Sequence record: PV340856.1
Length of the DNA stretch: 64,000 bases
Reading direction: 5' to 3' (one strand)
The position numbers and the translations under genes are program-made. Below are positions 15,601 through 36,536 of the stretch, in pieces (position 1 is the first letter of the stretch; every line of letters begins with the position of its first letter). The notes beneath the pieces are model-generated. The model was given only the letters and a program-made list of their open reading frames with translations. It ran no database searches and was not told where the DNA came from.

Positions 15601-18600
15601 TGACCCAGGAGATCTTGTTTCTGTAGATTCATATGATGCAGATCTTTATGGCAAATCCCTTCCATACATCGGACAAATCCCAGTTTCCGATATTATTGAT
15701 TTGAGACCAAGAGTTGTATCTACGGCATCGACTGTATCTCCATTTGAGTACAAGTCAAGATCGTTTGATCCGTTAACATCTTCAACAACTCATGTATTTT
15801 CTAGCGAAAAAAATATTAACATAAGTTATAATTATTATTTGGGAAGAATTGATAAAATTTTCTTGACCAGGGATGGAGTCTTTAGTAGGTCTAAAGGTGT
15901 TCCTGCAACATTCCCAGAACCTCCTAATAATGTTGATAATGCTTTAGAAATTGCTACCATCGACATGCCTCCATATCTCTATTCTATTAGAGATCTTGAC
16001 GTGCAAGTAAGCACACACAAACGATATCAAATGCAAGATATTGCTGATATTGAAACAAGGTTAACTAATGTAGAGTATTATACTAGCCTTTCTCTTCTTG
16101 AAAATGAAACTTCCAGTTTAACAATTAAGGATCCAATCACCAATCTTGATAAGTTCAAGTCTGGTTTTTTTGTGGACAATTTCAAGTCTAAAAATGGCGG
16201 AGGAGATACAGACAATACTCAATTCAGATGCAGTATTGATACCACAGAGGGAGAAGCAAGACCAGAACACTATACTACTTCTATTGATTTATTATTGGGT
16301 TCAGAATCTGTTATTGGTGCTGCAACTTCTTCGTTTCCAGATGCAGACTACAGATTTGTAAGTGATCTTGGAGATTCAAATGTAGTTAAAAGAGGAGATA
16401 TTGTTACTCTCAACTATAAAGATGTTGAATATTTAAAGAATTCATTTGCTACTAGAAGTGAAAATGTAAATCCATTTCACGTTGTAAACTGGATTGGTGT
16501 GTTGGAACTAAATCCAGCTACTGACACTTGGATTGATACTAGAAGATTGCCTGGAAAGGATGTTGATGTTGAGGGTAGTTATGGCGCTATACAAGGTATG
16601 GTTGGTGGAGTTGATAGTAATACTGGGTTGTCTCCCGTTCAATGGAATTCTTGGGAAACAACTTGGACTGGAAAACAAAGAATAAAAGGACCCGTTATAT
16701 TCAAGAAAAAGAAAAAAGTCAAAGGAACTGTACGGAAAAGAAAAAAGAGAGGATCCTTTGTGCCTGGTAGAGGAATTCCCATTACTACAACTAAAAGATG
16801 GGTACAAAAAATTAAAAAGGTTAGGGAAGTAACTACTGTACGAACGGGCAATAAGAGTAGAGATGGCATTCAATATAGAGTTGATGAAAAAATTGACTCT
16901 AAGAGCTTAGGTAGTAGTGTTATTTCTAGTGATGTTGCTGCTGTGATGAGATCTAGAAATGTTGAGTTCATTTGTAAGAGGTTAAAACCAAATACACAAC
17001 TCTATGCATTTTTTGATAATATCGATATGAATGCATATATTGTTCCAAAACTCATTGAAATTGAGATGGTCAGTGGAACATTTGCTACAGGAGAGATGGT
17101 ACGGGGTGATGGAATTAATTCCAGAAATAAGAGCATTAGATTTAGACTTGCCCAACAGAATCATAAGTATGGTCCATATAACAATCCGACAGAAACATAC
17201 GTTTCTAATCCATATAATGTAAGTAATTCTATTTCTAATTCATATTCTTCGACTACAACTATTCTTAATGTGGATACCGCATCTTTAGAACTCCAATCTG
17301 CATCTGGATTCTATGGGTGTATTTCTAAAGGTATGAATTTAATTGGCGCATCTAGTGGAGCTATTGCAAAAGTTAAAGATATCAGATTGATTACTGATAG
17401 AGCTGGCGTTGTTATTGGATCTTTATTCATTCCTGATCCAACTCAAAAGTCTACTCAAGTATTTCAGACTGGTAGCAAAACGTTTACTCTTACTTCTAGT
17501 AAGACCAATGAAACTATTTCTGGATTTACTGATTCTTCAGCTGAAGCAACATTTATGTCTTCGGGAACAATTAATAATACTCAAGAAACAACTCTAAGAA
17601 TTCGTAATGCTACGGTTGAAAGAGTTCCAAGATCGGAAAGTCAAAATGTTGAAAGAAGACGTACTAGGAGAGTTACTAAAGTCAAGTTTAGAAATAGAAA
17701 GAAGACTCAAACGAGATGGGTTGATCCTCTTGCACAATCATTTGAAGTTCCTGAAGAAAATGGAGTATATCTAACTAAGTGTGATATTTACTTTAGGACT
17801 AAAGATTCTTCTGCTCTTCCAGTAACTCTTCAGGTTCGTGAACTTCAACTGGGATTGCCAACGCAAACTATTCTTCCTTTTGGTGAAGTTGTTCTCGATC
17901 CCCAAAACGTAGTTGTATCTAATGATGGTAGTAAACCCACTACTTTCACTTTCCCCTCCCCAGTATATTGTGAGGGTTCTAGTCAATTTGCTCTTGTTCT
18001 TCTTTCTGCATCCAATGAATATACTGTATTCATCTCTAGGATGGGCGAAGAAGATATTTCTACCGCAAATAAACCAGATTCAGAAAAAATTATTGTTTCT
18101 CAACAACCACTTCTTGGATCTTTATTCAAGTCGCAAAATGGTGCTACTTGGGATCCAAGTCAATTTGAAGATTTGAAGTTTAACCTCTATCAAGCAGAAT
18201 ATCTAACAAAAAGTGGTACAGTTAAATTCTATAACCCAGATTTAGATATTGGCAATAAACAAATTGTCACCCTAAGTCCAAATCCACTTAATATGTTATC
18301 CAAGTCCAATATTATTGGTCTTGGCAAGAGTTTGACCTCTAATGAAGTAAATGGATTAATTTCTGGTACAACTATTGAACAAGAAAACAATCCAAACTTC
18401 TCCGCAAAACTTGTTGGAGTTCTTGGTGCAGTTGGAGTCAATAGCACTTTAAATATAACAGATAGTGGATTAAATTTTGCAAGTGGAAATCCAACGTATT
18501 CTGATGTTCCTCTAGTCAGTTTAACTGGAAGAGGATCTGGAGCAAAAGCAACAATTGTTATTAATAGTGGATCTGTGGCATCTGCTACAGTATCTGCTGG

Positions 18601-22611: not shown

Positions 22612-25600
22612 ATGACCGTTTATGTCTACGATGAAAATAAGGTAGATGTATTCGTTGCAGAAGATGCAGGTTTGGTAACCGCCTCTGCGACGATAACGGC
22701 TGACTATGGCAATATTTCAGACACCGCTGACGATGATCGCGGCGAAGATAATTTTAATCCTTGGTATTTTGGTCTAATTACAGACCTTGATGATGTTCTA
22801 CCATTTGGTAATTTTGAAGTTGGTGGAGAAGCAGAACCACTAATTTCTCCAAAGATTCCTGGTGGTGGACGATTCCGTATAGAAGATATTGCAGAAGTAT
22901 CGTATGTAACCCCCTGGAGAGGGTCTGGAACCCTCTTCGAGATCGGTGGCGGTCTGGAGAGACTGGTCATCCCAGATTTGGGTGCCGCAGGACCATCTCC
23001 ATCCATTTACGGACAAGCCCACGAATCCAATACATTCGTTGAAATCGGATCTGGTACACTCGCTCAACTTTCTGACGAAGGAGCGACAGCCAAGTTTAAT
23101 AGGTATCCCTGGGACGCTTCAGGTACTCTTACCCTCAGTGGATACAACTCCACCCAATTTCCAGACGATTTCATTGCGGTCATTAAAAATGTTGCGAAGG
23201 TCAAAGGCACAGGTCCTTCTCGCGTCATTTATGATTATAGTCTGGATCCAGATACAGAATTTGATGCTGAGAATTACGGATTCGTTACCCAGGTACAGGG
23301 AGGCAAATTCTCAGATAATGATGATCTGACATTTGATAGAATTATTACTAAGAGGAAAGATAGATCCTTTAGTGATAATGATCTTCTTGAGAATGAGAAT
23401 TATGGTGATATTACCGTATCTGCTCAAGAAACCGAAGATGATGGAATAATTCCAAGGAAACTGGGTGGTGGACTCTTTATGCACGATTACCAGGCAACTG
23501 GTATCAGGGCTCAAGAGTCAATTCCATTCGCATATCTTGGTCTTGGATCTCTATTCTCTCTTGGAGAACTCGATCCAGAGAAGGATGTCGATCAGGTATT
23601 TGCATATGCAGGTTCTGGTGGATTCAATGTTACTGGAGAGAACTTCTTCAGTCAGGCTCCACAGAGTACAATCTTTGGTGAAGAAGGTGAGTTCTCCTTC
23701 AGTGGATCTGCTGCAGAAGCATTTGTACCTGCAACTGTTGATAATACGGTACTGTTCAATCAGGTTGGATCTGCTGATGATAGGATCATCTGGCAGGCTG
23801 GTGAACGTAAGGTTACCATCAGACCAATTGGATTTGGTTCTGTACTCCTTTCGGATACTCCGCCAACAAATACGGCAACTTTATCCGTATCTGGAGAAGC
23901 AACAAGCATTCAAAGGACGTTTGTCGAAGAAAATGTAAGTCTATTCAACATCAGTGGAGATGCCGGCAATCCACTGGATGCAAGATTCACTCCCCACTTC
24001 AGATCTGCTAGAGGAGATATTATCCTCCCAGATGAGGATTGGGGTCTCATTAGTAACTCGGCTACCGAGTTTGAAGATTGGGGTTATATCAGAGAAGTTG
24101 CAACCACCTCTCTCGTATTTGGAGATATTCTTTCTCCATTCAATTACATTCAAATTGGCGGTCAGCATTATCCAAGTACGGATACATTCTCTGTTGGGGA
24201 GTCCTCTTTTGCCAAACAGACACTTGGAGTTACTGGCATTGCAACCTTCAGACTATCTGAAGATTCCAGTCTGGAAAGAACATTCGATTACGAATCTTCA
24301 GGTATTACTGGTATTGCTACCTACAAGGCTGGTATCAATATCTTCGGTGCAAATTGGTTCAGTCAGGCTCCACAGAGTACAGTATTTGGTCTCGAAGGAG
24401 AACTTACTCTTAGTGGTTCTGCTGACGAGTCCACCACTCCATTCATTGAACCTCAAGGAACTGATGGTAACTTCAGATTCCTTACTGGATCTGCTGAAAT
24501 TGTTATTGATTCGGTCGCAAGAGCAATTGCACCTTCTGTACTTGGTGATGTCTATATTGGTGGAACGGCTGATATTAGATTCAGTCCTGCTGTCACTGGT
24601 GTTGGTATTGCTACATTCCGTCAAGGTAGAGAAGAATTCCAGACATATCGCAGAATCATTGATCCTGATATGGATCTGGTCCTTACCACAATTGGTGGTG
24701 GACTTATCAATGAGGACTTTGTTAAGAGTTACAATGAGTCTTCCATCTACTATGGTCCTCAGGATGAGGATTATGGATCAATTCTCAATGCAGCTGCATA
24801 TGGATTTGGTCTCAACTTCTCTACAAGTGTTCTTCCAAGTTTCGACAAAACAGAATCTTATTCTACTGATTTCTCAACAACTGTTGTATCTGAAAATCTT
24901 GGTACTATCACCGAAGGTATTCCAATCCCAGGTGGTAAACCATACGATCAATATCTATATCCCTACTATCCTGGATTTATTGATCAGGATATTGATGGCG
25001 GTTATGATGATCATGGATTTATTAATGTTGATGCGGATTCTCAAACAAGAGAACCATTCGGAAATCTTGATATTGAACAACCACCAACCCTTACGGTTAC
25101 TAGATTCATTCCTAGATGGAATGGTTCTGGTACTATTGTTCCTTCTGGTACTGCAAGAGAGAGATTTATTACTTCGGACGGCAATACCGTTCTCTTCGAC
25201 TTTATTGGAACAACTTCTCCAGAGAAGTTCATTGCTCAGACTCCAGAAGATACAATTCTCCTCACCTTTGCTGGTGCAGCAGAAGATGAATCGGTAACCT
25301 TCAGCGAAGTTGGAATTGGAACCGCATACTTCTCTGGTGATAGTGTTGAGAGAGTCGAATTTGTTGAAATTGGAACTGGAATTCTTTCCTTCTCTGGTGC
25401 GGCAATTGAGAGATCCTCTATGGATCCCCCAGAAGGAACATATCTCCACGTATTCAGTGGAGAAGATGTTGAATCTTCGATTACCTACGCCTCTCAGGCA
25501 ACCAAACCCACATTACGTTTGGTTGGTCAACTGGTTCATCCACAGATTGATTACACCCCACATTACGGTATTGATAGAAATATCGGTATTGAGACTGGCA

Positions 25601-27129
25601 TTACTCTTAACCCTGGAAGTTCTCCTGGAGAATATGGTAATCCTGGTATTGTCACTACCAGATTTATTCCAAATTATGATGGTCTTGGCGTTATTTCTCT
25701 CAGTGGAAAAGCTATTGGTCGTACAAACGCACCAATCTTTACCTCTGGTACTATTCACATTCTCGGTGTTCACACCGCAGCTCAAGGAATCAGTTCTGGA
25801 AGAGAGACGGGTCTTACCGAAAGTTTCTCTCCTGGAACAATATTTGGTGGTCCTGGACAACTTACCTTCAAGGGAATTGCTCCAAATCGTCCAATTCAGG
25901 TCTTTGGTTATTACGGAGATGATAGAGATCCTGGTGCTGGTACATCTGGAGTCATTTCGATTGATCCTTCTCAGGAAGGAATCAAAATCAGATCTCTCGA
26001 AGATTATATCGGTGTTGGAACTGCATACTTCTCTGGAGCATATTCCGATCTATCTGCAACATTCAGAGAAATTGGAACGGGAGAACTCTACAAGTTCTCT
26101 GCTCTATACGAAAGAAGAACCTTCGATTATGTTGGTTCTGGCACACTTACTGCATCTGGAACAACAGATGCTGCAAGCATCTTCCAGACTCCAGACAATA
26201 CAGTTCTATTCACAGTTTCTGGAGAGGCACAAAAACTTGTCGCCCTCAAGGACGAAATGGGTGGAACGATTTCCATCTACAATACAGAAAAAATTGTTAC
26301 TGGAATTACTCTTTCTATTGCAACTGAAGGCACGTTCAGTTTCTTTTCCAGTGGTGCGGAATCTATTGTCATTCCTTCAGATGCTACTACGGTTCTCTTC
26401 GATGTCGAAGGAATTGCCGATACCAGAGAAATTCAAGTCTACGGTTACTATGGAGATGATAGAGATCCTGGTACATCTGGAACTATCACAGTTGTTGGTG
26501 AACTTACACATCCACAGATTGACTTTACACCTGCAGAAACTGGATTTGGAGACATTTCTTTCTCAGGACAATCTAGCATCAAGGCGCAACTTTCAGTTGT
26601 CGGAAAAGGAATTGCTACTCTTTCTGGATCTGCAACAGAAAAATTTGTCAGTGGCTCTGGATCAGATACAATTCTCTTCAACATCGATGGAGATGGAGAA
26701 ACAGCTCTCAATTCTGTATATGGTTATTACGGAGACGACAAGGATCCTGGTACTTCTGGTCAACTCATATTCTCTGGAATTGGCGACACAAAACCGATCC
26801 AAGTTTATGGATATTATGGAGACGACAAGGATCCTGGTACTTCTGGTCAAATTACAATTTTTGGACGACCTCTTATTCATCCAGAAGTCGATTATACCCC
26901 ACATATTGGCAAAGACACTGCGATTTTATTCAAAATCGGTGGTGGTGTCAATATCCGAAGAACTTTTCCAGAAGTTATTGGAGAAGGATCTCTCTTTGGA
27001 TTCGACTCTGGAGAAGAAGCATATGCAAGATCCACATATGTCGGCATCGGTGTTGCAAACTTCTTCTCGAATGCAGTCACGGAAACTTTGGCATTTGAAC
27101 CGTCTCGCGTATACGTTACTATCATTTAA
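22612..27129 (+). CDS. Large acidic repetitive protein (1505 aa), putative virion structural/fibre protein
   Basis: Long ORF within the tail module with internal repeats (VYGYYGDD[RK]DPGTSG, HPQIDYTP, FSQAPQST.FG, E[DN]YG.I). Confidence 0.65.
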   Translation: MTVYVYDENKVDVFVAEDAGLVTASATITADYGNISDTADDDRGEDNFNPWYFGLITDLDDVLPFGNFEVGGEAEPLISPKIPGGGRFRIEDIAEVSYVTPWRGSGTLFEIGGGLERLVIPDLGAAGPSPSIYGQAHESNTFVEIGSGTLAQLSDEGATAKFNRYPWDASGTLTLSGYNSTQFPDDFIAVIKNVAKVKGTGPSRVIYDYSLDPDTEFDAENYGFVTQVQGGKFSDNDDLTFDRIITKRKDRSFSDNDLLENENYGDITVSAQETEDDGIIPRKLGGGLFMHDYQATGIRAQESIPFAYLGLGSLFSLGELDPEKDVDQVFAYAGSGGFNVTGENFFSQAPQSTIFGEEGEFSFSGSAAEAFVPATVDNTVLFNQVGSADDRIIWQAGERKVTIRPIGFGSVLLSDTPPTNTATLSVSGEATSIQRTFVEENVSLFNISGDAGNPLDARFTPHFRSARGDIILPDEDWGLISNSATEFEDWGYIREVATTSLVFGDILSPFNYIQIGGQHYPSTDTFSVGESSFAKQTLGVTGIATFRLSEDSSLERTFDYESSGITGIATYKAGINIFGANWFSQAPQSTVFGLEGELTLSGSADESTTPFIEPQGTDGNFRFLTGSAEIVIDSVARAIAPSVLGDVYIGGTADIRFSPAVTGVGIATFRQGREEFQTYRRIIDPDMDLVLTTIGGGLINEDFVKSYNESSIYYGPQDEDYGSILNAAAYGFGLNFSTSVLPSFDKTESYSTDFSTTVVSENLGTITEGIPIPGGKPYDQYLYPYYPGFIDQDIDGGYDDHGFINVDADSQTREPFGNLDIEQPPTLTVTRFIPRWNGSGTIVPSGTARERFITSDGNTVLFDFIGTTSPEKFIAQTPEDTILLTFAGAAEDESVTFSEVGIGTAYFSGDSVERVEFVEIGTGILSFSGAAIERSSMDPPEGTYLHVFSGEDVESSITYASQATKPTLRLVGQLVHPQIDYTPHYGIDRNIGIETGITLNPGSSPGEYGNPGIVTTRFIPNYDGLGVISLSGKAIGRTNAPIFTSGTIHILGVHTAAQGISSGRETGLTESFSPGTIFGGPGQLTFKGIAPNRPIQVFGYYGDDRDPGAGTSGVISIDPSQEGIKIRSLEDYIGVGTAYFSGAYSDLSATFREIGTGELYKFSALYERRTFDYVGSGTLTASGTTDAASIFQTPDNTVLFTVSGEAQKLVALKDEMGGTISIYNTEKIVTGITLSIATEGTFSFFSSGAESIVIPSDATTVLFDVEGIADTREIQVYGYYGDDRDPGTSGTITVVGELTHPQIDFTPAETGFGDISFSGQSSIKAQLSVVGKGIATLSGSATEKFVSGSGSDTILFNIDGDGETALNSVYGYYGDDKDPGTSGQLIFSGIGDTKPIQVYGYYGDDKDPGTSGQITIFGRPLIHPEVDYTPHIGKDTAILFKIGGGVNIRRTFPEVIGEGSLFGFDSGEEAYARSTYVGIGVANFFSNAVTETLAFEPSRVYVTII
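26731..26850 (+). repeat. Exact 33-bp direct repeat GGAGACGACAAGGATCCTGGTACTTCTGGTCAA (26731-26763 and 26818-26850)
   Basis: Read directly from sequence; 87-bp (29-aa) spacing; related copies near 25915 and 26452. Confidence 0.85.
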
Positions 27130-27132
27130 GTT

Positions 27133-27140
27133 TATAAATA
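27133..27140 (+). promoter_or_regulatory. T4-type late promoter TATAAATA
   Basis: Exact consensus about 34 bp upstream of the ATG at 27174. Confidence 0.75.
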
Positions 27141-27173: not shown

Positions 27174-27632
27174 ATGACAAAGCAGGTTCAATTTAGAAAG
27201 GGAACTACAGCTGAACACTTTAACTTCACTGGAGCCCTTGCTGAAATTACTGTTGATACAGATAAAAATGTTGCTGTTGTTCATGATGGTGCAACCCCAG
27301 GAGGTTTTGAACTTTCAAAATCGAGATGGACTTACGTTGCTGGTGACACCGTAACTGGTACTAACCAAAAATATACGGTGGACTCAACATATAGTCCAAC
27401 AGGACTGAATGTTACTCTTCCAACCCCCCGTGCAGTGGGTGACTGGGTTTGGATTGAAGACTTTGGTAATTTTATGAGTATCAATCCAGTAAATATTATC
27501 TCGGATCAATTTTTTGAGAACGGACATCTCGTTAGAGAAAGCTCACCCTTTATTATGGATGTATCTGGAGCTTCCGTAACATTCATTTGGAATGGAAGCC
27601 TTTGGAAAGTGTTCAACAATAGAGGCAGCTAA
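27174..27632 (+). CDS. Small tail-fibre protein with Mtd_N-like N-terminal domain
   Basis: MTKQVQFRKGTTAEHFNFTGALAEITVDTDKNVAVVHDGATPGGFEL closely resembles the N-terminus of Bordetella phage major tropism determinant; C-terminal VTLPTPRAVGDWVWIED...GASVTFIWNGSLW fibre domain. Confidence 0.7.
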   Translation: MTKQVQFRKGTTAEHFNFTGALAEITVDTDKNVAVVHDGATPGGFELSKSRWTYVAGDTVTGTNQKYTVDSTYSPTGLNVTLPTPRAVGDWVWIEDFGNFMSINPVNIISDQFFENGHLVRESSPFIMDVSGASVTFIWNGSLWKVFNNRGS

Positions 27633-27634
27633 CT

Positions 27635-28039
27635 ATGGCATTAACCCTAAGTAATTCTATTTCTGGTCGTTTTGAACCATCAGAATCATCTGGTTTCTTC
27701 GTATATGCATTAAGAAGAGATGCAGAAAACATGCTGTACTTCTCCAAGGTTAGTGCTGCATCTACTGAACTAGGTGAGTTCTATCGTAACGACGGAACGG
27801 CAATTCCCGAGTTTGGTGACGGTATTGATTACGGTACATATGACGTTGGTGTTGGTAAAACATCAGTCATCCGTAATGATATTGCTACTGAGAAAAAATC
27901 TTTAGATGATCCGAATGATAAATATCAACAGATCCGCTTTGACAGAAGGAACCTCTATTATTACATAGATGATGATGGTTTTTTCGTCATCAGGTTCAAT
28001 GGACCAGATTATGATTACAACTCTATCGGACCCAAATAA
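27635..28039 (+). CDS. Hypothetical protein, tail module
   Basis: 134-aa ORF 2 bp after the upstream stop; DKYQQIRFDRRNLYYYIDDDGFFVIRFN motif. Confidence 0.65.
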   Translation: MALTLSNSISGRFEPSESSGFFVYALRRDAENMLYFSKVSAASTELGEFYRNDGTAIPEFGDGIDYGTYDVGVGKTSVIRNDIATEKKSLDDPNDKYQQIRFDRRNLYYYIDDDGFFVIRFNGPDYDYNSIGPK

Positions 28040-28058: not shown

Positions 28059-31000
28059 ATGGCTGAGTTTAGACTTGGAAGAGTAAAATTCAACTGGACG
28101 GGCAACTGGGCACCTTCCAAATCCTACCTGATTGACGACATCGCCAAGTTTGGTGGCAATACTTATGTAGCGGTCGCTAACCACACTTCCACGGCAAGCA
28201 CTGCTAACTTCTATACCGACCTTGGAAATTGGAATCTACATATTGAGGGTCTGGAGCAAAGAGGCGAATGGACTACTGATACTTATTACAGAGTCAACGA
28301 TCTCGTCACTTATGCTAACGTAGTATATCGTGTTACTGAGGCACACACTTCTGTTGGTACATTTATCGATGAAACGAAGGTTGTTCAGTATGTCGCAGGA
28401 TTTAATGCGGAAGGAGATTGGAACTTAGAAGAAGATTACCAAAAAGGAGACGTTGTTAACTACAACGGATCGTCCTATGTTGCAATTACTACTTCCGTAG
28501 CAGGATTTGTTCCACCACAATTCATCGGTTTAGGAACAGGTAGCAAGTGGAATATTCTTGCTGATGGCCTTGCTGGTGCGGCAATCACATATACCGAGGG
28601 TACATACTATAGAGGCGATATGATCCTCTATGGTGGTAATACATATCGCCACAAGGTTGGTGTTACTACTAACGTTTCTCCAATTCAAGTTGGTTTGGGA
28701 AGTGTTGGTGATGCTGCTAGAGATGGCTCATCAACTTGGGATCTTTTGGTCAAAGGATTCAGTTTCGTTGGTAATTTCTCTACAACATTCGCATATCACC
28801 CAGGTCATGTTGTTAGATATGGATCTAACTCCTATGTCTCGGTTGGCAATTCCTTCGTAAATATTGACCCAGTTGTTGGTGTAGGCACCTATTGGGAGAC
28901 ACTGGCTGCTGGTGACTCCGCTGCTGCTCTGAACACTAAGGGTGATCTTCTTACCTATAACGGTGGTCCGGCTAGAATCGGTATTGGTTCTACTGGTTAT
29001 GCTCTTGCAGTTCAGTCTAATGGACTACCTGGATACGAAATTGTAGGTAACCAGACTAGAATTTACTATGTTGACTCCGAGGATGGAATTGATACAAACA
29101 ACGGTCTTGCACCTAACCTAGCATTTAGAACAATTAAACAGGCTTGTCGTTCTGCACGTCCTGATAACGCTATTACTGATTTCGATTATACAGCTGCCAC
29201 TGGTGTTGCGACAATCACATCTCCTGGTCACGGATTGGCTAACACTGGTACGTTTATCCAGTTGGCTGAGATTGAGTTTGAGTGTCTGTCTGGTGGTAAT
29301 GTCTTCAACATCCTGGGCATGACCTACAACAAGTCTGTTGGTCTTGCAACTATCACGGCTATTGGTCTTGGTGCTGCTCCAGAAATCGGAATCGGTGCTA
29401 CTGTAAGACTAAGAAACCTTGGTGTTTCGTTCACTGGTAACGCAAACTTCGATCACCAGTTCTCCAGTGCATTGGATGATGCAGTTATCACTGGTGGTGA
29501 TTATATCCACAACTTCGTTGCTGCTACTGCAGGTGCAGTCAACGTTGTGACTGGATCCCTTGCAGGTTCTCAGTTAACTCCAACAAACGCTGTTTACTCC
29601 GCAACTAGTGGTGAATTGGAGATCACAGTTGGTTCTCACGGCCTGTCTATTAGTGACACCATCAGCTTCGATGCCAATTCCATGACATTCACTTGTCAGA
29701 TGGACGGTGGTACTGCTAATAAAACATATCCAAGAACAACTGACCCCGCATACGGCGTTAATCTTCCAATTAGTGCAATTACTGCGAATACCTTCACAGT
29801 TAACGTTGGACCTTCTCCAATTGTAAACTTCAACGTTAGTGATGCAACATATAACCAGAACACTGGTGACATCACAATGACCATCGGTGTTCACCAACTT
29901 GATGTTGGCACATCGATCAAACTTCTCACTGAAGGTCTGATCTTTAAGTGTTCCATGGATGGTTATCTAACCGACCACGCATATCCAAGAGCAACTGCTG
30001 GTGATGGTTCTCCTGACCCTGCATACAACACTGCTCTGTCAATTACTGCTGCAACAACTACCACCATCACAGTTAATGTTGGTACTGCAAGTTCTTCTCA
30101 GACAATTAACGGTAAGTTCCCTGCAGTTCACACTCAGGCATCTACCTTCCAGTTCCCAGTACAGGCTGTTCCTGATGCGAACTCTATCGTAGTTAACGTT
30201 GGTGCTTCTCAGACTGATTACCTCTACGTTTCTGGTGGTACTGCATTCGTTGGTGTTACTACAACTGTTTATCCTGATAAGGTTTCCAAGTCTTACTTTG
30301 AGGTTCTTCAGGTTATTGACTCTGACACCATCAGAACTAACGTTGGTATTTCTACTATCAACCACACATATGTAAGAGGTGGTCATCTAACTGACTTGAC
30401 TCCTGCTATTCTGAAACTATCTGCTTCTCAGTTCTATGAGCAACTGCCAATCAAGGTTCCTCCTTTCACCTCGATTGTTGGTAACTCTCTAAGAGGTACT
30501 CAAGTTCTACCTGCTTCTGGTATTTCTGACGACAGTGTTACTCCTAACAACAGATCTCAGATGTTCCAAATGTCTGATGCAACTACGCTTCAGGCGCTTT
30601 CCATGAAAGGAATGGAAGGATTCTATTATGATCCACAAGCACCCTATGTACTCGATAATGCCAACCTAAGAACTGGTATTGGTACTACCGCTTGTGGTGT
30701 TGTTTGTGCTCTAAACCCAGATTCTCCAATCAATAACAAGTCTCCTTACGTCAAGGATTGTACCGTATTCTCGGACAATGCTTATGACTATGGTCGCTTC
30801 GGTGGTGGTGCAGTCGGCGTCTTCTGTGACGGTGGCGTCCATGACGAAGGTGCAAAATCGATGGTCTTTGACTCCTTCACCCAGGTATCTTCTGATGGTG
30901 CTGGATTCATCCTCGACAAGAGTGCAATTGCTGAGATTGTCTCCTGTTTCACCTACTACTGTCAGTGGGGTTACTACTCTGGTGGTGGATCTAGAATCCG

Positions 31001-32492
31001 TTCTGTTGGTGGTAACAACTCCTATGGTGACTATGGTGTTATTGCATCTGGTTTCTCCACTGAGGAGACCCCAAGAACCGCAAGAGTCTTTGGTTCCCTG
31101 ATGGCCGTTAATGGCGCTACTAAGGCAGGTACACTGGCAATCGGTGCTACCATGTTCGGTGCAACATCTGGTGCTCGTGGATGGTTCCTGAATGACCAAA
31201 CTGCTGCAGATAAGATCTACTTCAAGTATCATCCTGGTTACGGTTCGGTTGGTCTTGGAACCACTGGATTCGTAGATGGTGAAGTTGTCTGGTTCGGTGA
31301 TGGTGGTGAAAATGGTGCTGGTATTGGTTCCATCACGATGTCTGGTGTTACATCTTCTATCAGTGGACAAAAGGGTACAATCCTTGAAGTTGATAATATC
31401 TCTTCAACTCTATTGGTTGGTGACGCACTTGGATTCTCCACAACTTCTTACGGTGATGATGATCTCTTCTATATCATCAATACCATTACAAATGTCTCTG
31501 CCGCGACTACTTACACATATTACACGACGACTGGCATCGCAACCATAACATATCCAGAACGTGCTACATTGACCATTTCCCCAGAGAAATCTAATGGAAC
31601 ATGGGATACCAGAGAAGTTACTGGTGCAGGTTCTACTGTTAGTATTAGAACTCTCTTCTCACAGTGTCGCCTAACAGGTCATGACTTCCTGAGTGTTGGT
31701 ACTGGCAGTAAGGCAGAAACCAACTATCCTGATGTTGATCAAACTAGAATTATTCAGGGTAATGAGACTAATTACTTCGGTCCTGGTAAAGTCTTCTTTG
31801 TCTCTACTGACCAAGGTGGTAACTTCAGAGTTGGTCAATTCTTCTCCGTTGACCAGTTGACTGGTCGCGCCACCCTGGACGCCTCCGCGTTCAACCTGTC
31901 TGGTCTGACTGAACTGAGACTGGGTGCAATTGGTGGTCAGGTCGGTGAGGCAATTAACGAATTCTCCTCTGACGAATTCATGTCTGGTCTGTCCAATAAT
32001 GCATGTCCTACTGAGGCTGCAGTTGCTGGATTCCTCCGCCACGGTTCGATGGGAACCAAGGCCATGACTCCTCCAGTTGGTACTACCGCTCAAAGACCTG
32101 GAGGCGTTGATGAAGAGTTCAACACTGGTGCTCTAAGATTTAACACCGATCTCGGTGCTCTTGAGTACTACAACGGAACCAGTTGGATACAACCTGGAAT
32201 TCAATCTTATTCTACCGTGACTACTTCTGGATCAGTTGTATCTGGCACCACTTACTTTGTCAATACCAATGGCGGTCAAGTCACTCTAGATCTTCCCGCA
32301 TCTCCTAATCTTGGAGATACCATTAGATTCTATGACGTTGCGAAGACATTCGATTCTAACAACTTAATTGTTGGACGTAATGGAAAACTGATTCAGGGTG
32401 ACTCTGCTGATATGACTGTTGCTCTTGAGGGTGCGTCATTTGAACTCACCTTCTCTGGTGACTCCTATGGTTGGAGACTGTTCTCCGTCTGA
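28059..32492 (+). CDS. Long tail fibre / tailspike-like protein (1477 aa)
   Basis: AGGAG RBS; five N-terminal W...Y..[GN]D.V.Y.G..Y repeats (CBM5/12-like), FTC/YPR repeats, pectin-lyase-like beta-helix region, C-terminal TLDLPASPNLGDTIRFYD...GRNGKLIQG domain. Confidence 0.8.
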   Translation: MAEFRLGRVKFNWTGNWAPSKSYLIDDIAKFGGNTYVAVANHTSTASTANFYTDLGNWNLHIEGLEQRGEWTTDTYYRVNDLVTYANVVYRVTEAHTSVGTFIDETKVVQYVAGFNAEGDWNLEEDYQKGDVVNYNGSSYVAITTSVAGFVPPQFIGLGTGSKWNILADGLAGAAITYTEGTYYRGDMILYGGNTYRHKVGVTTNVSPIQVGLGSVGDAARDGSSTWDLLVKGFSFVGNFSTTFAYHPGHVVRYGSNSYVSVGNSFVNIDPVVGVGTYWETLAAGDSAAALNTKGDLLTYNGGPARIGIGSTGYALAVQSNGLPGYEIVGNQTRIYYVDSEDGIDTNNGLAPNLAFRTIKQACRSARPDNAITDFDYTAATGVATITSPGHGLANTGTFIQLAEIEFECLSGGNVFNILGMTYNKSVGLATITAIGLGAAPEIGIGATVRLRNLGVSFTGNANFDHQFSSALDDAVITGGDYIHNFVAATAGAVNVVTGSLAGSQLTPTNAVYSATSGELEITVGSHGLSISDTISFDANSMTFTCQMDGGTANKTYPRTTDPAYGVNLPISAITANTFTVNVGPSPIVNFNVSDATYNQNTGDITMTIGVHQLDVGTSIKLLTEGLIFKCSMDGYLTDHAYPRATAGDGSPDPAYNTALSITAATTTTITVNVGTASSSQTINGKFPAVHTQASTFQFPVQAVPDANSIVVNVGASQTDYLYVSGGTAFVGVTTTVYPDKVSKSYFEVLQVIDSDTIRTNVGISTINHTYVRGGHLTDLTPAILKLSASQFYEQLPIKVPPFTSIVGNSLRGTQVLPASGISDDSVTPNNRSQMFQMSDATTLQALSMKGMEGFYYDPQAPYVLDNANLRTGIGTTACGVVCALNPDSPINNKSPYVKDCTVFSDNAYDYGRFGGGAVGVFCDGGVHDEGAKSMVFDSFTQVSSDGAGFILDKSAIAEIVSCFTYYCQWGYYSGGGSRIRSVGGNNSYGDYGVIASGFSTEETPRTARVFGSLMAVNGATKAGTLAIGATMFGATSGARGWFLNDQTAADKIYFKYHPGYGSVGLGTTGFVDGEVVWFGDGGENGAGIGSITMSGVTSSISGQKGTILEVDNISSTLLVGDALGFSTTSYGDDDLFYIINTITNVSAATTYTYYTTTGIATITYPERATLTISPEKSNGTWDTREVTGAGSTVSIRTLFSQCRLTGHDFLSVGTGSKAETNYPDVDQTRIIQGNETNYFGPGKVFFVSTDQGGNFRVGQFFSVDQLTGRATLDASAFNLSGLTELRLGAIGGQVGEAINEFSSDEFMSGLSNNACPTEAAVAGFLRHGSMGTKAMTPPVGTTAQRPGGVDEEFNTGALRFNTDLGALEYYNGTSWIQPGIQSYSTVTTSGSVVSGTTYFVNTNGGQVTLDLPASPNLGDTIRFYDVAKTFDSNNLIVGRNGKLIQGDSADMTVALEGASFELTFSGDSYGWRLFSV

Positions 32493-32559: not shown

Positions 32560-33342
32560 ATGGCCAACTATAGATCATATAAAAAAGTCACAGCGTCCCA
32601 GGTTCCTGATGGGTCTATCACCATTGAAAAACTCGCAAATGGTGTTGGACCCTCTTGGTGCGTAAAAACTTTCTATGGTGATCCAGGAGCTTGTACTCCT
32701 GGTTGTTGCTGTAACTGGACAGTACCAGCGGGAGTTGCTAAACTAACTTGGGAACTATGGGGTGCTGGAGGAAACGGACACGGAGCCTGTTCTTGTAGAA
32801 GATGCCATCACTATAGAGGTGCTGGTGGAGGTTCCTTCACAACCAAAACAATCAGTACTACTCCAGGATGTTCATATACAGTATGTGCTGCTGGAGTTTA
32901 CAGATGTTGTTCACGAGAATGTACAGGATGTTACGGATGTGCATCGTATGTTAATGGATATAACTTGAGTAACTTCTGTGCAGTTGGTGGTGGTAGAGGA
33001 GAGGCTAATACAGATTGGTCCAACCTCTGTCATTCAACAATTGCTTGTTGCGTTCAACCTGGAAGTTATAATAGTGACTTTGGAATGAATGCACATTGGC
33101 CTGGATTCAGTGGTCACTGGAGCTGCCATTGTGGACTATCTGTAACTCAAACTTGTTCTAGTGGTGCTCCATTTATTGGAGTTGGTAATAAAACGTATTC
33201 TTCACACTGCTGGATTCGTTGTGGTTGCTGGACTTCTCCATACGGTGCAGGTGGCCAGGGTGCAATGACTTCATATTGTGAGAGATGCTGCGGACAAGGT
33301 GGTACAGGTGGATCTGGACTTGTAAGACTCACATACATGTAA
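32560..33342 (+). CDS. Cys/Gly-rich tail-associated protein, paralogue 1 (putative adhesin)
   Basis: 260 aa, 28 Cys by hand count; WTVPAGV..LTWELWGAGGNG...GAGGG...GQGGTGGSGLVRLTY glycine-rich fibre-tip pattern. Confidence 0.75.
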   Translation: MANYRSYKKVTASQVPDGSITIEKLANGVGPSWCVKTFYGDPGACTPGCCCNWTVPAGVAKLTWELWGAGGNGHGACSCRRCHHYRGAGGGSFTTKTISTTPGCSYTVCAAGVYRCCSRECTGCYGCASYVNGYNLSNFCAVGGGRGEANTDWSNLCHSTIACCVQPGSYNSDFGMNAHWPGFSGHWSCHCGLSVTQTCSSGAPFIGVGNKTYSSHCWIRCGCWTSPYGAGGQGAMTSYCERCCGQGGTGGSGLVRLTYM

Positions 33343-33354
33343 TAGAGGGAATCA

Positions 33355-34149
33355 ATGGCTAGCTATTTAAGTTACAAAAAAATTCAAGGCGATCAGTTAG
33401 AGGATAATATCCTCGACGCTGCTAAGTTCTCCACATCCCCGACTTCCACATTTGGAGTGAAGTGGATCTACGGGACAATGTGTCGTTGTTCTCCTGGTTG
33501 TTGTTGTCTTTGGACTGTACCTACTGGAGTTAAGAAACTCTGGATTCAGGCTTGGGGATCTGGTGGTAATGGTGCAGGTGCATGTTCTTGTAATAGATGC
33601 CAACACTATAGAGGTGCAGGCGGTGGATTTTATAATAGTGTCATGATTGATACTGTTGCAGGATGTCAGTATCGTGTCTGTGCAGGTGGTGTATATCCAT
33701 GTCTCTCTATAGAATGTTGTGGATGTATTGGTTGTGCATCATATGTTAATGGATATAACTTGAGCAACTTCTGTGCATATGGTGGTTCATGTGGTCACGC
33801 TAATAGTAGTTGGTCAACCTCATGTAACGCAACTTGGCATTGCTGTGTAGCACCAACATCTAATGGTGGTCAGTTTGGTATGGGTAATCTGCGTGACAGT
33901 TGGACCAATGGTGGATATTCCACTAACCGTGGCTGGTGTCACTGCTATGTTCAGATGACTAACCCAACTGCCGCTCCATTTATTGGAACAGAAGTTATTC
34001 AATCTATTCGTGAGTGCTGGATTCGTTGTGGTTGCTGGATCGTTCCTTATGGTAATGGTGGACAAAATGCAATGACTACCTATTGCGGACGTTGCTGTGG
34101 TCAAGGTGGTACTGGCGGTGGCGGTCTCGTCAAAATTACGTACTTCTGA
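33355..34149 (+). CDS. Cys/Gly-rich tail-associated protein, paralogue 2
   Basis: 264 aa, 28 Cys by hand count; same scaffold (WTVPTGVKKLWIQAWGSGGNG...GQGGTGGGGLVKITYF). Confidence 0.75.
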   Translation: MASYLSYKKIQGDQLEDNILDAAKFSTSPTSTFGVKWIYGTMCRCSPGCCCLWTVPTGVKKLWIQAWGSGGNGAGACSCNRCQHYRGAGGGFYNSVMIDTVAGCQYRVCAGGVYPCLSIECCGCIGCASYVNGYNLSNFCAYGGSCGHANSSWSTSCNATWHCCVAPTSNGGQFGMGNLRDSWTNGGYSTNRGWCHCYVQMTNPTAAPFIGTEVIQSIRECWIRCGCWIVPYGNGGQNAMTTYCGRCCGQGGTGGGGLVKITYF

Positions 34150-34166
34150 TAAATAACTATTAAATA
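34148..34166 (+). promoter_or_regulatory. Tandem late-promoter-like motifs (GATAAATA, TTAAATA) before paralogue 3
   Basis: Two TAAATA boxes in the 26-bp gap. Confidence 0.45.
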
Positions 34167-34175
34167 GGACTCCTA

Positions 34176-34973
34176 ATGGCTAATTACGCTTCTTATAAAC
34201 AGATTAGTAACTCCCAAATCGTTGATGGGTCTATTACAAACACCCAGTTAGTACAGGGCGCTTTCTCGAACTGGAACGTCAAATGGATCTATGGTGATGC
34301 ACAGGCAATGACATCTGGTTGTTGCTGTAATTGGACAGTACCTACTGGAGTCCAAAGGGTTTATTGGGAGCTCTGGGGTGCTGGAGGAAACGGACACGGA
34401 ACGTGTTCTTGTAATAGATGTTATAACTGGCATGGTGCTGGTGGAGGATACTATAACTCAAAATCAATGGGTGTCAGTGCTGGAGACAGTTACACTGTTT
34501 GTGCAGCTGGTGTTTATCGTTGTTGTTCCAGATCTTGTGTTGGATGTAGAGGATGTAGTTCCTATGTAAACGGAACTGGACTATCTAACTTCTGTGCTTC
34601 TGGTGGGACAAGAGGTTGTGCAACTAACTCTTGGAGTACTACTTGTTTCTCTGCATTCCAAGATTGCTGCGTTCAACCAGGAGCATGGGGTGGAGACTTT
34701 GCAATGGGTAACCACGCTGGTGGTACTAGAAAAGGATATGGTGGTGGTGGTTGGAACTGTCACTGTTACTATAACGAAAGTAGACCCACTGGTGCTCCAT
34801 TCATGGGTACTATGGGTGTCAACTCTGCTGTTAGACACTGTTGGGTTCGTTGTGGTTGCTGGAGAGTTCCTTATGCACACGGTGGTCAGGGCGCAGTTAC
34901 ATCTTACTGTGAAAGATGTTGCGGACAAGGTGGAACAGGTGGTAGTGGTGTTGTTAAAATCAGTTACATGTGA
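34176..34973 (+). CDS. Cys/Gly-rich tail-associated protein, paralogue 3
   Basis: 265 aa, 25 Cys by hand count; same scaffold (WTVPTGVQRVYWELWGAGGNG...GQGGTGGSGVVKISYM). Confidence 0.75.
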   Translation: MANYASYKQISNSQIVDGSITNTQLVQGAFSNWNVKWIYGDAQAMTSGCCCNWTVPTGVQRVYWELWGAGGNGHGTCSCNRCYNWHGAGGGYYNSKSMGVSAGDSYTVCAAGVYRCCSRSCVGCRGCSSYVNGTGLSNFCASGGTRGCATNSWSTTCFSAFQDCCVQPGAWGGDFAMGNHAGGTRKGYGGGGWNCHCYYNESRPTGAPFMGTMGVNSAVRHCWVRCGCWRVPYAHGGQGAVTSYCERCCGQGGTGGSGVVKISYM

Positions 34974-34994
34974 TCCATCATTAGTATTATTCAG

Positions 34995-35016
34995 ACCCCG
35001 AAAGGGGTTTTTTTTA
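34995..35016 (+). terminator. Rho-independent terminator with GAAA tetraloop
   Basis: ACCCC-GAAA-GGGGT followed by a T run. Confidence 0.8.
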
Positions 35017-35024
35017 TGTTTTTT

Positions 35025-35032
35025 TATAAATA
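35025..35032 (+). promoter_or_regulatory. T4-type late promoter TATAAATA
   Basis: Exact consensus immediately after the terminator and upstream of the chaperone gene. Confidence 0.75.
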
Positions 35033-35069: not shown

Positions 35070-35846
35070 ATGGCAACAGAAATTATTTCTCACGCTTGGA
35101 ACATGCCAGTTCCAAATGACTTCCTAAGAGATCACTCTTTTAGTGAAGGTAGAACAAGAGCCGTCAGTTATGACGGACCAGATAAGATTTGGCTTCAACT
35201 CGGTGCAGATGGTACTGAACTGTATGGTCCACTGACTGAAGATGATATGGCTGATGGGCGCCCAGTCCCAGCTGATGTTACTCAGATGTTTGAAGTAAAC
35301 TGTACTGAGTATCCTCTCATCTGTCAGTTAAGAGCACCAGTTATCAACGAAAGACAAGAAGATAGAAGTGTAGATGATGAAATTCGTCATCCAGATTGTC
35401 CTGATATGACTGCCCAAGGTTACAGGACCTTTACTTACAATGAAACTCTTTTTGTGGAAGACATCTATGACGCTTCAACTGTCAGAGTTGTTGATGGAGT
35501 TCCAACAGTTCATGCCTTTACCGTTAATGAAAAACTGATTGGTAGAGCAGATGATTTAACTTGGGATGATATCAGAGCTCATAGAAACTCTCTTCTAGAT
35601 GGTAGTGATCAATCTATTGCAGAGGACATGCCTGAAGATATGAAGAATACTTGGAAAGCATATCGCCAAAAGTTGAGAGATCTCCCTGCAGAGCTTGAGG
35701 CTGCTGGAGTTAGTCCAAATATTGCATACTATATGTTCCCACAACAGCCATTCTTTACTACTCCACCTTCTGATCCAGAACCACCTGCAGATGCATCTGC
35801 AGATTGGGCTCCACCAGAAAGTGGTGTTATGAATGGGGTTTCCTGA
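35070..35846 (+). CDS. Tail fibre assembly chaperone-like protein
   Basis: C-terminal WDDIRAHRNSLLDGSD...WKAYRQKLRDLP matches the phage tail assembly chaperone motif; follows fibre genes. Confidence 0.75.
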   Translation: MATEIISHAWNMPVPNDFLRDHSFSEGRTRAVSYDGPDKIWLQLGADGTELYGPLTEDDMADGRPVPADVTQMFEVNCTEYPLICQLRAPVINERQEDRSVDDEIRHPDCPDMTAQGYRTFTYNETLFVEDIYDASTVRVVDGVPTVHAFTVNEKLIGRADDLTWDDIRAHRNSLLDGSDQSIAEDMPEDMKNTWKAYRQKLRDLPAELEAAGVSPNIAYYMFPQQPFFTTPPSDPEPPADASADWAPPESGVMNGVS

Positions 35847-35890: not shown

Positions 35891-35903
35891 AATGGGAGGA
35901 ATT

Positions 35904-36536
35904 ATGTTTGAACTGAATGAATCTCGTAAAACAACAGTAAAAAAAGTCTACGATCATGCTAAAAATGAACTGGGACATGTATGGAGGTATGTAATTACTG
36001 TAGATGATTTTTATAAAAACCCAGATGAAGTGAGGGAGTTTGCTTTAAATTGTACCCCCAAAAAAGATAAAAAGTATACTGGCAATCTTATTGGGTCTAG
36101 AGTTGTTGAAGATGTAAATGGTTTTGATCAGAATTTAAGACAAGTTTTTGAAAAAGCATGTCAATTTGATTTTTGGAATCCAGAGTTCGATGAAACTTTT
36201 TGGAGAGACACAAAATTTATGGTAAATGTCACCACCTCAGATGATATTGAAACCAGATTTAATGAGAGAAAACACACTTATACATTCCATAAAGACTCCA
36301 CCAGTTATAAGTGGGCATCATTAATCTATCTCAATAAAGAAGAGGAGTGTGATGGTGGAACCAACTTTTATGCGTGGATGCCAGAAGATCCTTGCGCTAC
36401 ACCTAGATTGGAATATAGTATAGAAATGAAGTATAATAGAATGGTTTTATATGAGTGTGATCATATGCATGGAGCTGTCCTAAAAAAAGGTATGTTCAGT
36501 GATTTCCCGAGACTAACACAAGTGTTATTCATGTAA
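35904..36536 (+). CDS. 2OG-Fe(II) oxygenase-like protein (DUF6445-like), copy A
   Basis: GGAGG RBS before ATG 35904; VDDFYKNPDEVR, FHKDS (HxD), WASLIYLN, GGTNFY, MKYNRMVLY, HMHG, distal Arg. Confidence 0.7.
   Translation: MFELNESRKTTVKKVYDHAKNELGHVWRYVITVDDFYKNPDEVREFALNCTPKKDKKYTGNLIGSRVVEDVNGFDQNLRQVFEKACQFDFWNPEFDETFWRDTKFMVNVTTSDDIETRFNERKHTYTFHKDSTSYKWASLIYLNKEEECDGGTNFYAWMPEDPCATPRLEYSIEMKYNRMVLYECDHMHGAVLKKGMFSDFPRLTQVLFM

Follow-up and report, generated by a model that had tools for sequence, protein, structure and literature searches.

Three cysteine-rich proteins of the TNF-like plus glycine-rich fold class beside a long tail fibre of the marine cyanophage Sf-FS3—a fixed cassette of candidate fibre-end modules

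Introduction

What role do three adjacent genes play whose products carry a cysteine (Cys) at about every tenth position and which lie between the gene of a long tail fibre and that of a tail-fibre-assembly (TFA)-type chaperone? This question is raised by a locus of Synechococcus phage Sf-FS3, a T4-like cyanomyovirus with Synechococcus WH8102 as isolation host and S-SSM7 and S-SSM6a as nearest cultured relatives. The stretch of DNA analysed—called the window in the following—comprises 64,000 nucleotides (nt), namely bases 62001-126000 of the phage (PV340856.1), and all coordinates refer to it. T4-like cyanophages, of whose receptor-binding proteins little is known, are among the most abundant viruses of the ocean. 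For the end of the fibre that recognises the host in the S-SSM7, P-SSM2, and S-CAM1 groups, the trio described herein is a concrete candidate.

The three proteins, designated A, B, and C or copies 1, 2, and 3, belong to a family that is a real, widespread, phage-only, and uncharacterised variant of a known adhesin fold. We consider it rather probable that they are expressed late and act as stand-alone modules of the fibre end with the TNF-like plus glycine-rich (TG) fold, that they form a fixed three-component set of the virion, and that they are braced by Cys. The genes concerned are the following (aa, amino acids):

28059-32492, + strand: 1477-aa fibre protein with CBM_5_12 repeats near the N terminus (PHROG 9851 'tail fiber protein', 1038 bits; Pfam CBM_5_12)
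32560-33342, + strand: Cys-rich TNF-like/glycine-rich protein, lineage A (copy 1), 260 aa, 28 Cys (Pfam Gly_rich_2, PHROG 4205, structural model, Foldseek)
33355-34149, + strand: Cys-rich TNF-like/glycine-rich protein, lineage B (copy 2), 264 aa, 28 Cys (PHROG 4205, 180 bits; own orthologue group)
34176-34973, + strand: Cys-rich TNF-like/glycine-rich protein, lineage C (copy 3), 265 aa, 25 Cys (PHROG 4205, 187 bits; Gly_rich_2 below cutoff; own orthologue group)
35070-35846, + strand: TFA-type chaperone, 258 aa (Pfam PF16778 Phage_tail_APC, 42.6 bits; PHROG 4912, 8746, 4697; several PHROG matches named 'tail fiber assembly')

Composition of the trio

A first-pass annotation, made from the bare sequence, had described three genes of 260-265 aa with 25-28 Cys each, or about 10% Cys. 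The open reading frames (ORFs) were confirmed exactly at the positions given there, and every one of the motifs listed as common to the three was found in all of them. The placement behind a long tail fibre and ahead of a chaperone likewise holds, the fibre upstream being recognised by its match to PHROG 9851 and the chaperone by a downstream ORF with a Phage_tail_APC domain. Cys makes up 10.8%, 10.6%, and 9.4% of A, B, and C, respectively, and glycine (Gly) 16.9%, 16.3%, and 18.1%. The mean Cys content of the long + strand ORFs in the window is 0.96%, and the trio takes the top three places by Cys content among the window ORFs of at least 150 aa. Within Sf-FS3, pairwise identity among A, B, and C is 55-60%. 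All three match PHROG 4205 with 180-187 bits, a family without assigned function. A chance or low-complexity artefact is ruled out by the identity of 55-60%, by purifying selection, and by hundreds of relatives.

Fold and family membership

A structural model of copy 1, built with AlphaFold2 (AF2) on 44 relatives, reaches a predicted local distance difference test (pLDDT) of 80 and a predicted template-modelling score (pTM) of 0.75. It shows a beta-sandwich with long nonregular stretches. About 33 residues precede the sandwich and are modelled as three short helical turns with pLDDT 51-66. When this model was compared with the PDB by Foldseek, the top match was the Pam3 fibre (7ypx_A, expectation value E 1.9e-6), and further matches were the Bxb1 tail tip (9d93, E 1.7e-4) and the TG domains of ALK/LTK (E 3e-4 to 5e-3). 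The Foldseek probability is 1.0 for Pam3 gp24 and for the Bxb1 Qa/Qb chains, and 0.9-1.0 for ALK/LTK; below these, no credible match appeared among the 50 PDB matches listed. The same comparison with BFVD gave 205 matches at E <= 0.001, with proteins of S-CAM3 and P-SSM2 at the top. Most of the BFVD matches are named 'glycine-rich domain', tail fibre, mycobacteriophage minor tail, or giant-virus collagen-like proteins. Herein, the domain is usually C-terminal, and some of the proteins are 500-1300 aa long with longer N-terminal shafts.

At the level of sequence families, Pfam Gly_rich_2 (PF21722, cutoff 24.3 bits) scores 27.1 bits for copy 1, which is above the cutoff, and 18.2 bits for copy 3, which is below it; copy 2 gives no match. 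Gly_rich_2 also matches 31 of the 48 members of the wider Cys-rich family, with a best E of 3.7e-15. Membership therewith applies to the family, and each window protein by itself is a borderline case. Run against PDB sequences, a wider-family profile picks up the Cys-free N-terminal domain of RemZ (8gl8_D, E 1.7e-4). A six-sequence profile found no match among PDB sequences at E <= 10, and the NCBIfam search returned no matches.

By model and fold comparison, the three proteins are thus predicted to be stand-alone members of the TG (Gly_rich_2) fold class. The proposal of a glycine-rich fold of the fibre-distal, receptor-binding kind, made in the first-pass annotation, is supported by the AF2 model, by the Foldseek matches to Pam3 gp24, Bxb1, and ALK/LTK, by the fibre and minor-tail proteins among the BFVD matches, and by the place of the genes in a fibre operon beside a TFA-type chaperone gene. 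Two things are already known, namely the fold and the arrangement of a fibre-end module with a TFA-type chaperone. New are the dense, conserved set of Cys on the TG fold and the fixed cassette of three lineages, neither of which was in the papers or libraries searched. No library searched assigns a function to the Cys-rich family, and the literature searched held no paper describing this family and none mentioning PF21722. Hereby, the TNF-like/glycine-rich adhesin fold would have a subfamily with 22 near-invariant Cys that is made in the cytoplasm.

Three old lineages in a fixed order

For the comparison of loci, 81 related loci were used, 80 from IMG/VR plus S-SSM7. Wherever a locus is long enough, the fibre gene is followed by exactly three Cys-rich genes and these by the chaperone gene, with an oxygenase gene usually coming next; the only two-copy locus of the 81 ends at a contig edge. 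The 1477-aa fibre gene lies upstream of the trio in every related locus that is long enough to show it, and the chaperone lies 3' of the trio wherever contigs reach far enough. The order fibre–trio–chaperone was seen again in Tara contigs.

The nearest relative in another genome occupies the same position for all 242 of 242 genes (81/81, 81/81, and 80/80). Mean identity across the 81 loci is 70-72% within a position versus 55-60% between positions. Hence, the triplication predates the S-SSM7-like clade, and a recent tandem duplication is ruled out by this orthology by position. Within the clade, neither homogenisation nor loss, gain, or shuffling of the trio occurs in the 81 loci. The ratio of nonsynonymous to synonymous substitution rates (dN/dS) is 0.19-0.22 per lineage, indicating purifying selection, with the values being rough and dS near saturation. 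Pseudogenised duplicates are ruled out by a dN/dS of about 0.2 in each. Constraint is unevenly distributed, with dN/dS 0.28-0.41 in residues 151-216 versus 0.08-0.21 in the scaffold, all below 1, and it is relaxed also in the N-terminal third. Because positions are fixed in 242 of 242 genes and purifying selection acts on each, A, B, and C are to be seen, as far as sequence comparison reaches, as old, non-redundant lineages and not as freely interchangeable copies. The earlier description of the paralogues as interchangeable is therefore given up: the lineages are fixed, ordered, and orthologous in 81 loci, and the S-SSM7-like clade exhibits no copy-number variation or homogenisation.

The same annotation had placed the strongest variation between the motifs CCV and CHC. 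The stretch from the CC pair (residues 163-164 of copy 1) to the C-H-C motif (residues 189-191) indeed contains indels and shows raised variability, but it is not the peak, since residues 11-30, 151-170, and 191-200 are equally or more variable. Apart from the Cys, conservation across the three lineages is highest in residues 1-10.

Outside the clade, three copies are common but not universal. Three are found in S-CAM1 and the P0167 contig, and two in P-SSM2 and P-SSM5; P0128 is a 477-aa relative with a longer N-terminal shaft, which is the lone copy on a 3.5-kb contig and directly precedes a Phage_tail_APC gene. In P-SSM2 and S-CAM1, the Cys-rich genes are longer (299-356 aa, up to 36 Cys). 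Small conserved genes of 106-225 aa stand between or before the Cys-rich genes in the distant loci L084 (P-SSM2, 6104-9582), L085 (S-CAM1, 4206-8492), and L087 (2747-8365); they are absent from the Sf-FS3 cassette.

Among cultured phages, the family is restricted to marine T4-like cyanophages. A narrower alignment of it gave 5 matches, all on short contigs of metagenome-assembled genomes (MAGs), among 185,579 species genomes of cellular organisms. Hence—with these matches all being of this kind—the family is essentially phage-only. In metagenomes, it is abundant: a large protein search yielded 464 relatives at E <= 0.001, a library clustered at 50% identity 385 representative clusters, and the chaperone of one lineage was found in 67 blocks of a public assembly collection. 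A relative of 34% identity lies on a 16-kb, non-marine contig (L100, DZCQ01000036.1) from a MAG labelled Flavobacterium psychrophilum (SulCav sample), which may extend the family beyond marine cyanophages.

Comparison with the closest known systems

In Pam3 gp24, a helix for attachment at the N terminus is followed by a TNF-like sandwich and this by a glycine-rich lattice at the distal side (PMC9608196, PMC9942802). Virions contain gp24, and the TFA-type chaperone gp25 folds it at a stoichiometry of 3:3 (PMC9608196). The pair gp24/gp25 (PDB 7YPX, 7YFW) contains the top structural match of the trio, with a template-modelling (TM) score of only 0.41, and gp24 has a similar length of about 250 aa. 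Shared features are a short N-terminal attachment region (putative in the trio), the sandwich and the glycine-rich lattice (both predicted for the trio), a cyanobacterial host, and the adjacent gene of a TFA-type chaperone with a C-terminal helical domain, which in Sf-FS3 is the PF16778 domain (42.6 bits). However, gp24 is encoded by a single gene and forms a homotrimer with a long N-terminal helical bundle docked on the baseplate, whereas Sf-FS3 has three paralogues with an N terminus of about 33 residues, about 10% Cys, and a place after a 1477-aa fibre. The Pam3 papers describe no Cys cluster in the glycine domain of gp24; the fibre disulfides involve Cys28 of the N-terminal helical domain.

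S16/T2 gp38 (PDB 6F45) is likewise encoded by a small gene immediately after the distal fibre gene, and its glycine-rich motifs form an extended lattice with more variable segments between conserved motifs. It was to this family that the first-pass annotation had likened the trio, a view that finds no backing in the searches: no clear sequence-family match to gp38 was obtained from Pfam, PHROG, or NCBIfam, and 6F45 is not among the 50 Foldseek PDB matches listed. The only match in this direction is a weak one of 39 residues of copy 2 to PHROG 863 'tail fiber assembly' (E 0.0039). Moreover, gp38 is a single gene product without a dense Cys set, and its middle domain is a beta-helix, not a TNF-like sandwich (PMC9608196). 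To Pam3 gp24, S16 gp38 is only loosely similar (PMC9608196, PMC9942802).

The TG domain of ALK/LTK is a ligand-binding module of the same overall fold class by Foldseek; it differs in being the ectodomain of an animal receptor kinase that folds in the secretory pathway, and its TM-scores are 0.24-0.35. With the N-terminal domain of RemZ (Flavobacterium, PDB 8GL8 chain D; Gly_rich_2), sequence homology is detectable, but RemZ has no Cys at the aligned positions and is a 1114-aa cell-surface protein of the bacterial type 9 secretion system (T9SS). The tail-tip proteins Qa/Qb of mycobacteriophage Bxb1 (PDB 9D93) have about 230 aa, the same fold, and a location at a phage tail tip, with TM-scores of 0.46-0.51; they differ in that identity is 16-17% and the tail tip is that of a siphovirus. 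The Gly/Cys-rich iron-sulfur (Fe-S) proteins of Megavirinae particles resemble the trio in their high Gly and Cys content and are much smaller.

The conserved cysteines

In an alignment of 194 unique sequences, the share of Cys is at least 95% in 22 columns. A further 11 columns hold Cys in only part of the sequences, several of them in a lineage-specific manner. Across the wider family, every member has 6-12% Cys, and only about six positions are Cys in more than 84% of the members. RemZ carries small or hydrophobic residues at the aligned Cys positions. Because Cys-free relatives share the fold, the set of Cys is best read, judging from the alignment, as an additional brace, which relatives do without while keeping a stable fold.

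The conserved spacings comprise a CCC triplet within a strand, C-x-C-x2-C, C-x2-C-x2-C, an invariant C-H-C, C-x3-C-x-C, and C-x2-CC, and many conserved Cys motifs adjoin glycine runs. The number of Cys is odd in 119 of the 194 sequences (61%) and even in 75. Within the trio clade, covariation is confined to the Cys in alignment columns 35, 119, and 151, which are gained and lost together as three, not as a pair (phi 0.72-0.78), in a pattern that follows lineage. In the wide family, a clade-specific block of seven co-occurring Cys was seen (copy 1 residues 82, 124, 157, 191, 221, 223, and 240). Pairings sought from presence–absence covariation yielded no clean reciprocal pairs, with the patterns being confounded by phylogeny.

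Transcription signals and the chaperone

The transcription signals around the trio and the two genes at the head of the fibre cassette are located as follows:

27133-27140, + strand: T4-type late-promoter motif TATAAATA, 34 nt 5' of the Mtd_N gene, the first of the fibre operon
27174-27632, + strand: Mtd_N-domain protein, 152 aa, heading the fibre cassette (record annotation; Pfam Mtd_N on the syntenic gene of related contigs)
27635-28039, + strand: conserved 134-aa protein, PHROG 8997 (syntenic in S-SSM7, P-SSM2, and S-CAM1)
34993-35010, + strand: terminator-like G+C hairpin followed by a T-run, the putative end of the fibre-plus-trio unit
35025-35032, + strand: T4-type late-promoter motif TATAAATA, 38 nt 5' of the chaperone start codon

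The motif occurs 7 times in the window, all on the + strand, a count not above chance (5.5 expected). The sites checked (2514, 21466, 27133, and 35025) lie 21-43 nt 5' of a start codon. Among the related loci, all 58 of the distinct spacers that separate copy 3 from the chaperone contain TATAAATA, and all 58 contain a run of at least five T; of the spacers between the fibre and copy 1, 0 of 58 carry the motif. Spacers within the trio are typically 6-30 nt. We infer that the fibre and the trio share a single late transcription unit, which extends from about 27133 to about 35010. Given the hairpin, the T-run, and the motif in 58 of 58 spacers, the chaperone appears to head a separate late unit of its own, apart from its presumed clients.

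The chaperone consists of an N-terminal beta-rich domain (residues ~1-160) and a C-terminal helical Phage_tail_APC domain, and its AF2 model has a pLDDT of 88. Two Cys (C78 and C85) and many proline, aspartate, and arginine residues are invariant. Distant relatives of the trio are likewise paired with a Phage_tail_APC gene. In the first-pass annotation, the chaperone had been taken as that of the long fibre. By analogy with Pam3 gp24/gp25, and because single-copy relatives stand directly before the same type of chaperone, its clients may be the Cys-rich proteins, either in place of the long fibre or in addition to it. This assignment of clients is drawn from synteny, domain order, and the Pfam C-terminal domain and is to be regarded as a suggestion by analogy.

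Proposed mechanism and alternatives

In the reading put forward here, the trio would be transcribed late together with the 1477-aa fibre, and folding would be aided by the downstream Phage_tail_APC chaperone. The N-terminal peptide of about 33 residues, the first decade of which is highly conserved, would act as a docking peptide, with attachment at the 1477-aa fibre's distal end or possibly at the baseplate. Each module would comprise a beta-sandwich scaffold and extended glycine-rich hairpins, in which the glycine lattice is partly replaced by Cys-bearing segments. Three different binding surfaces would thus be presented at the fibre end, the variable segments 151-216 being the likeliest contact loops, and the three would be fixed components of the virion and not alternatives that can be swapped. 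The lattice would be rigidified by the 22 conserved Cys, most likely in the form of disulfides that arise when particles enter oxic seawater. In addition, the fold would possibly be held in the reducing cytoplasm by one or more metal-thiolate sites.

Several observations weigh against this reading. The trio is overall not more variable than the 1477-aa fibre, unlike classical hypervariable adhesins. The TM-scores are modest (0.41-0.46 versus PDB structures and up to 0.62 versus BFVD), and the N-terminal 30 residues of the copy 1 model are of low confidence (pLDDT 51-66). The C-terminal 150 residues of the fibre are neither unusually conserved nor unusually variable and point to neither a docking platform nor a hypervariable tip. 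The chaperone model matched no PDB fold at E <= 0.001, and the likeness of its N-terminal domain to Pam3 gp25 or Mu Tfa, which was looked for in this comparison, did not show. The odd Cys counts do not fit a state in which all Cys are paired within one chain, which is a weak argument. Virion proteomes were found for S-SM1, S-PM2, Syn9, and S-SCSM2R, and S-SM1, S-PM2, and Syn9 were not picked up as carriers by tblastn.

As to the chemistry of the Cys, they could instead act mainly as metal ligands (Zn, Fe, or Fe-S) that hold the glycine lattice in the reducing cytoplasm, with disulfides being minor—a tentative possibility that we take seriously without favouring it. The proteins have no signal peptide and would fold in the cytoplasm with a cytoplasmic chaperone. 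Spacings like those of metal sites are conserved, with C-x-C-x2-C followed by a histidine in some copies; Cys counts are odd in 61% of the sequences, and columns 35, 119, and 151 change as three. Precedents are the metal ions of T4 fibre proteins and the Gly/Cys-rich Fe-S proteins known from giant-virus particles. However, no metal-binding family in Pfam, NCBIfam, or the PDB sequences was matched, just one histidine is invariant, and the co-occurrence of Cys columns tracks clades, with phylogeny as a confounding factor. Exposed thiolates would also be unstable in the oxic, sunlit seawater in which these particles persist, and so would Fe-S clusters. A lattice spacing of about 5 Å, as reported for the glycine lattice of the Pam3 fibre (PMC9608196), would suit disulfides that link adjacent extended segments, and disulfides are known in Pam3 virions, a cyanophage precedent (PMC9942802). 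Cytoplasmic folding and the motif spacings would speak for at least some metal sites. Overall, a disulfide-dominant state is rated slightly above a metal-dominant one, and a mixture is plausible. The answer bears on particle stability in sunlit, oxic seawater and on a possible use of trace metals of the host in virion assembly.

The strict arrangement of three lineages raises the structural question of heteromeric fibre tips. In an obligate A-B-C heterotrimer, one protein of each lineage would sit around the three-fold axis of the fibre end in place of the homotrimer known from Pam3 gp24, creating an asymmetric tip with three different faces. This would agree with the constant number of exactly three genes in the 81 loci, with their unchanging order and orthologue groups, with three copies also in the distant S-CAM1 and P0167 contig, and with spacers of 6-30 nt in one transcription unit, which suggest similar expression levels. 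The conservation of the first ten residues in all lineages is as would be expected for equivalent docking on three identical fibre chains, and in Pam3 a trimer of gp24 is held by a chaperone that is likewise trimeric. We nevertheless regard such an obligate assembly as unlikely: P-SSM2 and P-SSM5 have two copies, the P0128 contig has one beside a chaperone, and lineage-specific fixed differences, sought as the signature of a heterotrimer interface, were confined to one alignment column, which is no clear signature. Still narrower is the idea of an A-B-C heterotrimer whose polyglycine-type lattice is held by metal-thiolate or Fe-S centres and not by an all-glycine hydrogen-bond network; we deem it quite improbable. 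If true, such a metal-stapled heterotrimer would be an intrinsically asymmetric receptor-binding tip that folds in the reducing cytoplasm and survives oxic seawater. To our knowledge, a tip of this kind has been described for no virion.

It is rather doubtful, yet somewhat easier to defend than an obligate heterotrimer, that each lineage makes an independent tip, either a monomeric cap in the manner of gp38 or a small fibre formed as a homotrimer, giving particles with three mixed types of tip. This would keep the alternative tips of the first-pass annotation but not their interchangeability. Strict conservation of the trio without loss, gain, or shuffling in 81 loci speaks against such independence, as does the missing sequence or fold match to gp38. 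On the other side, the genes follow a distal fibre gene as gp38 does in T2/S16-type phages (PMC9942802), distant relatives have one, two, or three copies, and the three short N-terminal helical turns of the low-confidence model resemble the description of the attachment domain of S16 gp38. That the trio is not in virions at all, and consists of late assembly factors or intracellular proteins such as redox or metal buffers, is very improbable. T4 gp38 is indeed an assembly factor absent from particles (PMC9608196), and PHROG 4205 is without assigned function. However, many fibre and minor-tail proteins have this fold in their distal domain, the neighbouring gene already provides a dedicated chaperone, and the genes are probably co-transcribed with a fibre. 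In distant relatives, moreover, the domain is fused to longer N-terminal shafts (P0128, 477 aa; BFVD, 500-1300 aa).

Neighbouring genes

Mtd_N denotes the N-terminal domain of the major tropism determinant, and the 152-aa gene at the head of the cassette is syntenic in Tara and JGI contigs. On the 5' side of the cassette lie three huge structural ORFs at 3576-11054 (2492 aa), 12698-20230 (2510 aa), and 22612-27129 (1505 aa). The first of these, with 2492 aa, has fibre-like repeats in common with the 1477-aa fibre (phmmer). On the 3' side, the chaperone is followed by one further gene (2OG, 2-oxoglutarate):

35892-36536, + strand: 2OG-Fe(II) oxygenase / DUF6445 protein, usually the next gene after the chaperone; its link to the trio is uncertain

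This gene belongs to PHROG 1644, annotated as 'minor coat protein', and stands 3' of the chaperone in most related loci. Several further 2OG oxygenase genes lie within the window. From 36585 to about 45200, a lipopolysaccharide (LPS)/heptose-like cluster separates the fibre cassette from the neck genes within the structural module, with the neck, sheath, tube, and portal genes coming after it. The cluster contains a heptosyltransferase-like protein, two carbamoyltransferases, a cytidylyltransferase, a PfkB kinase, a phosphoheptose isomerase, a cupin, and an epimerase. In P-SSM2 and S-CAM1, the cupin syntenic with that of the cluster is annotated as 'cysteine dioxygenase'.

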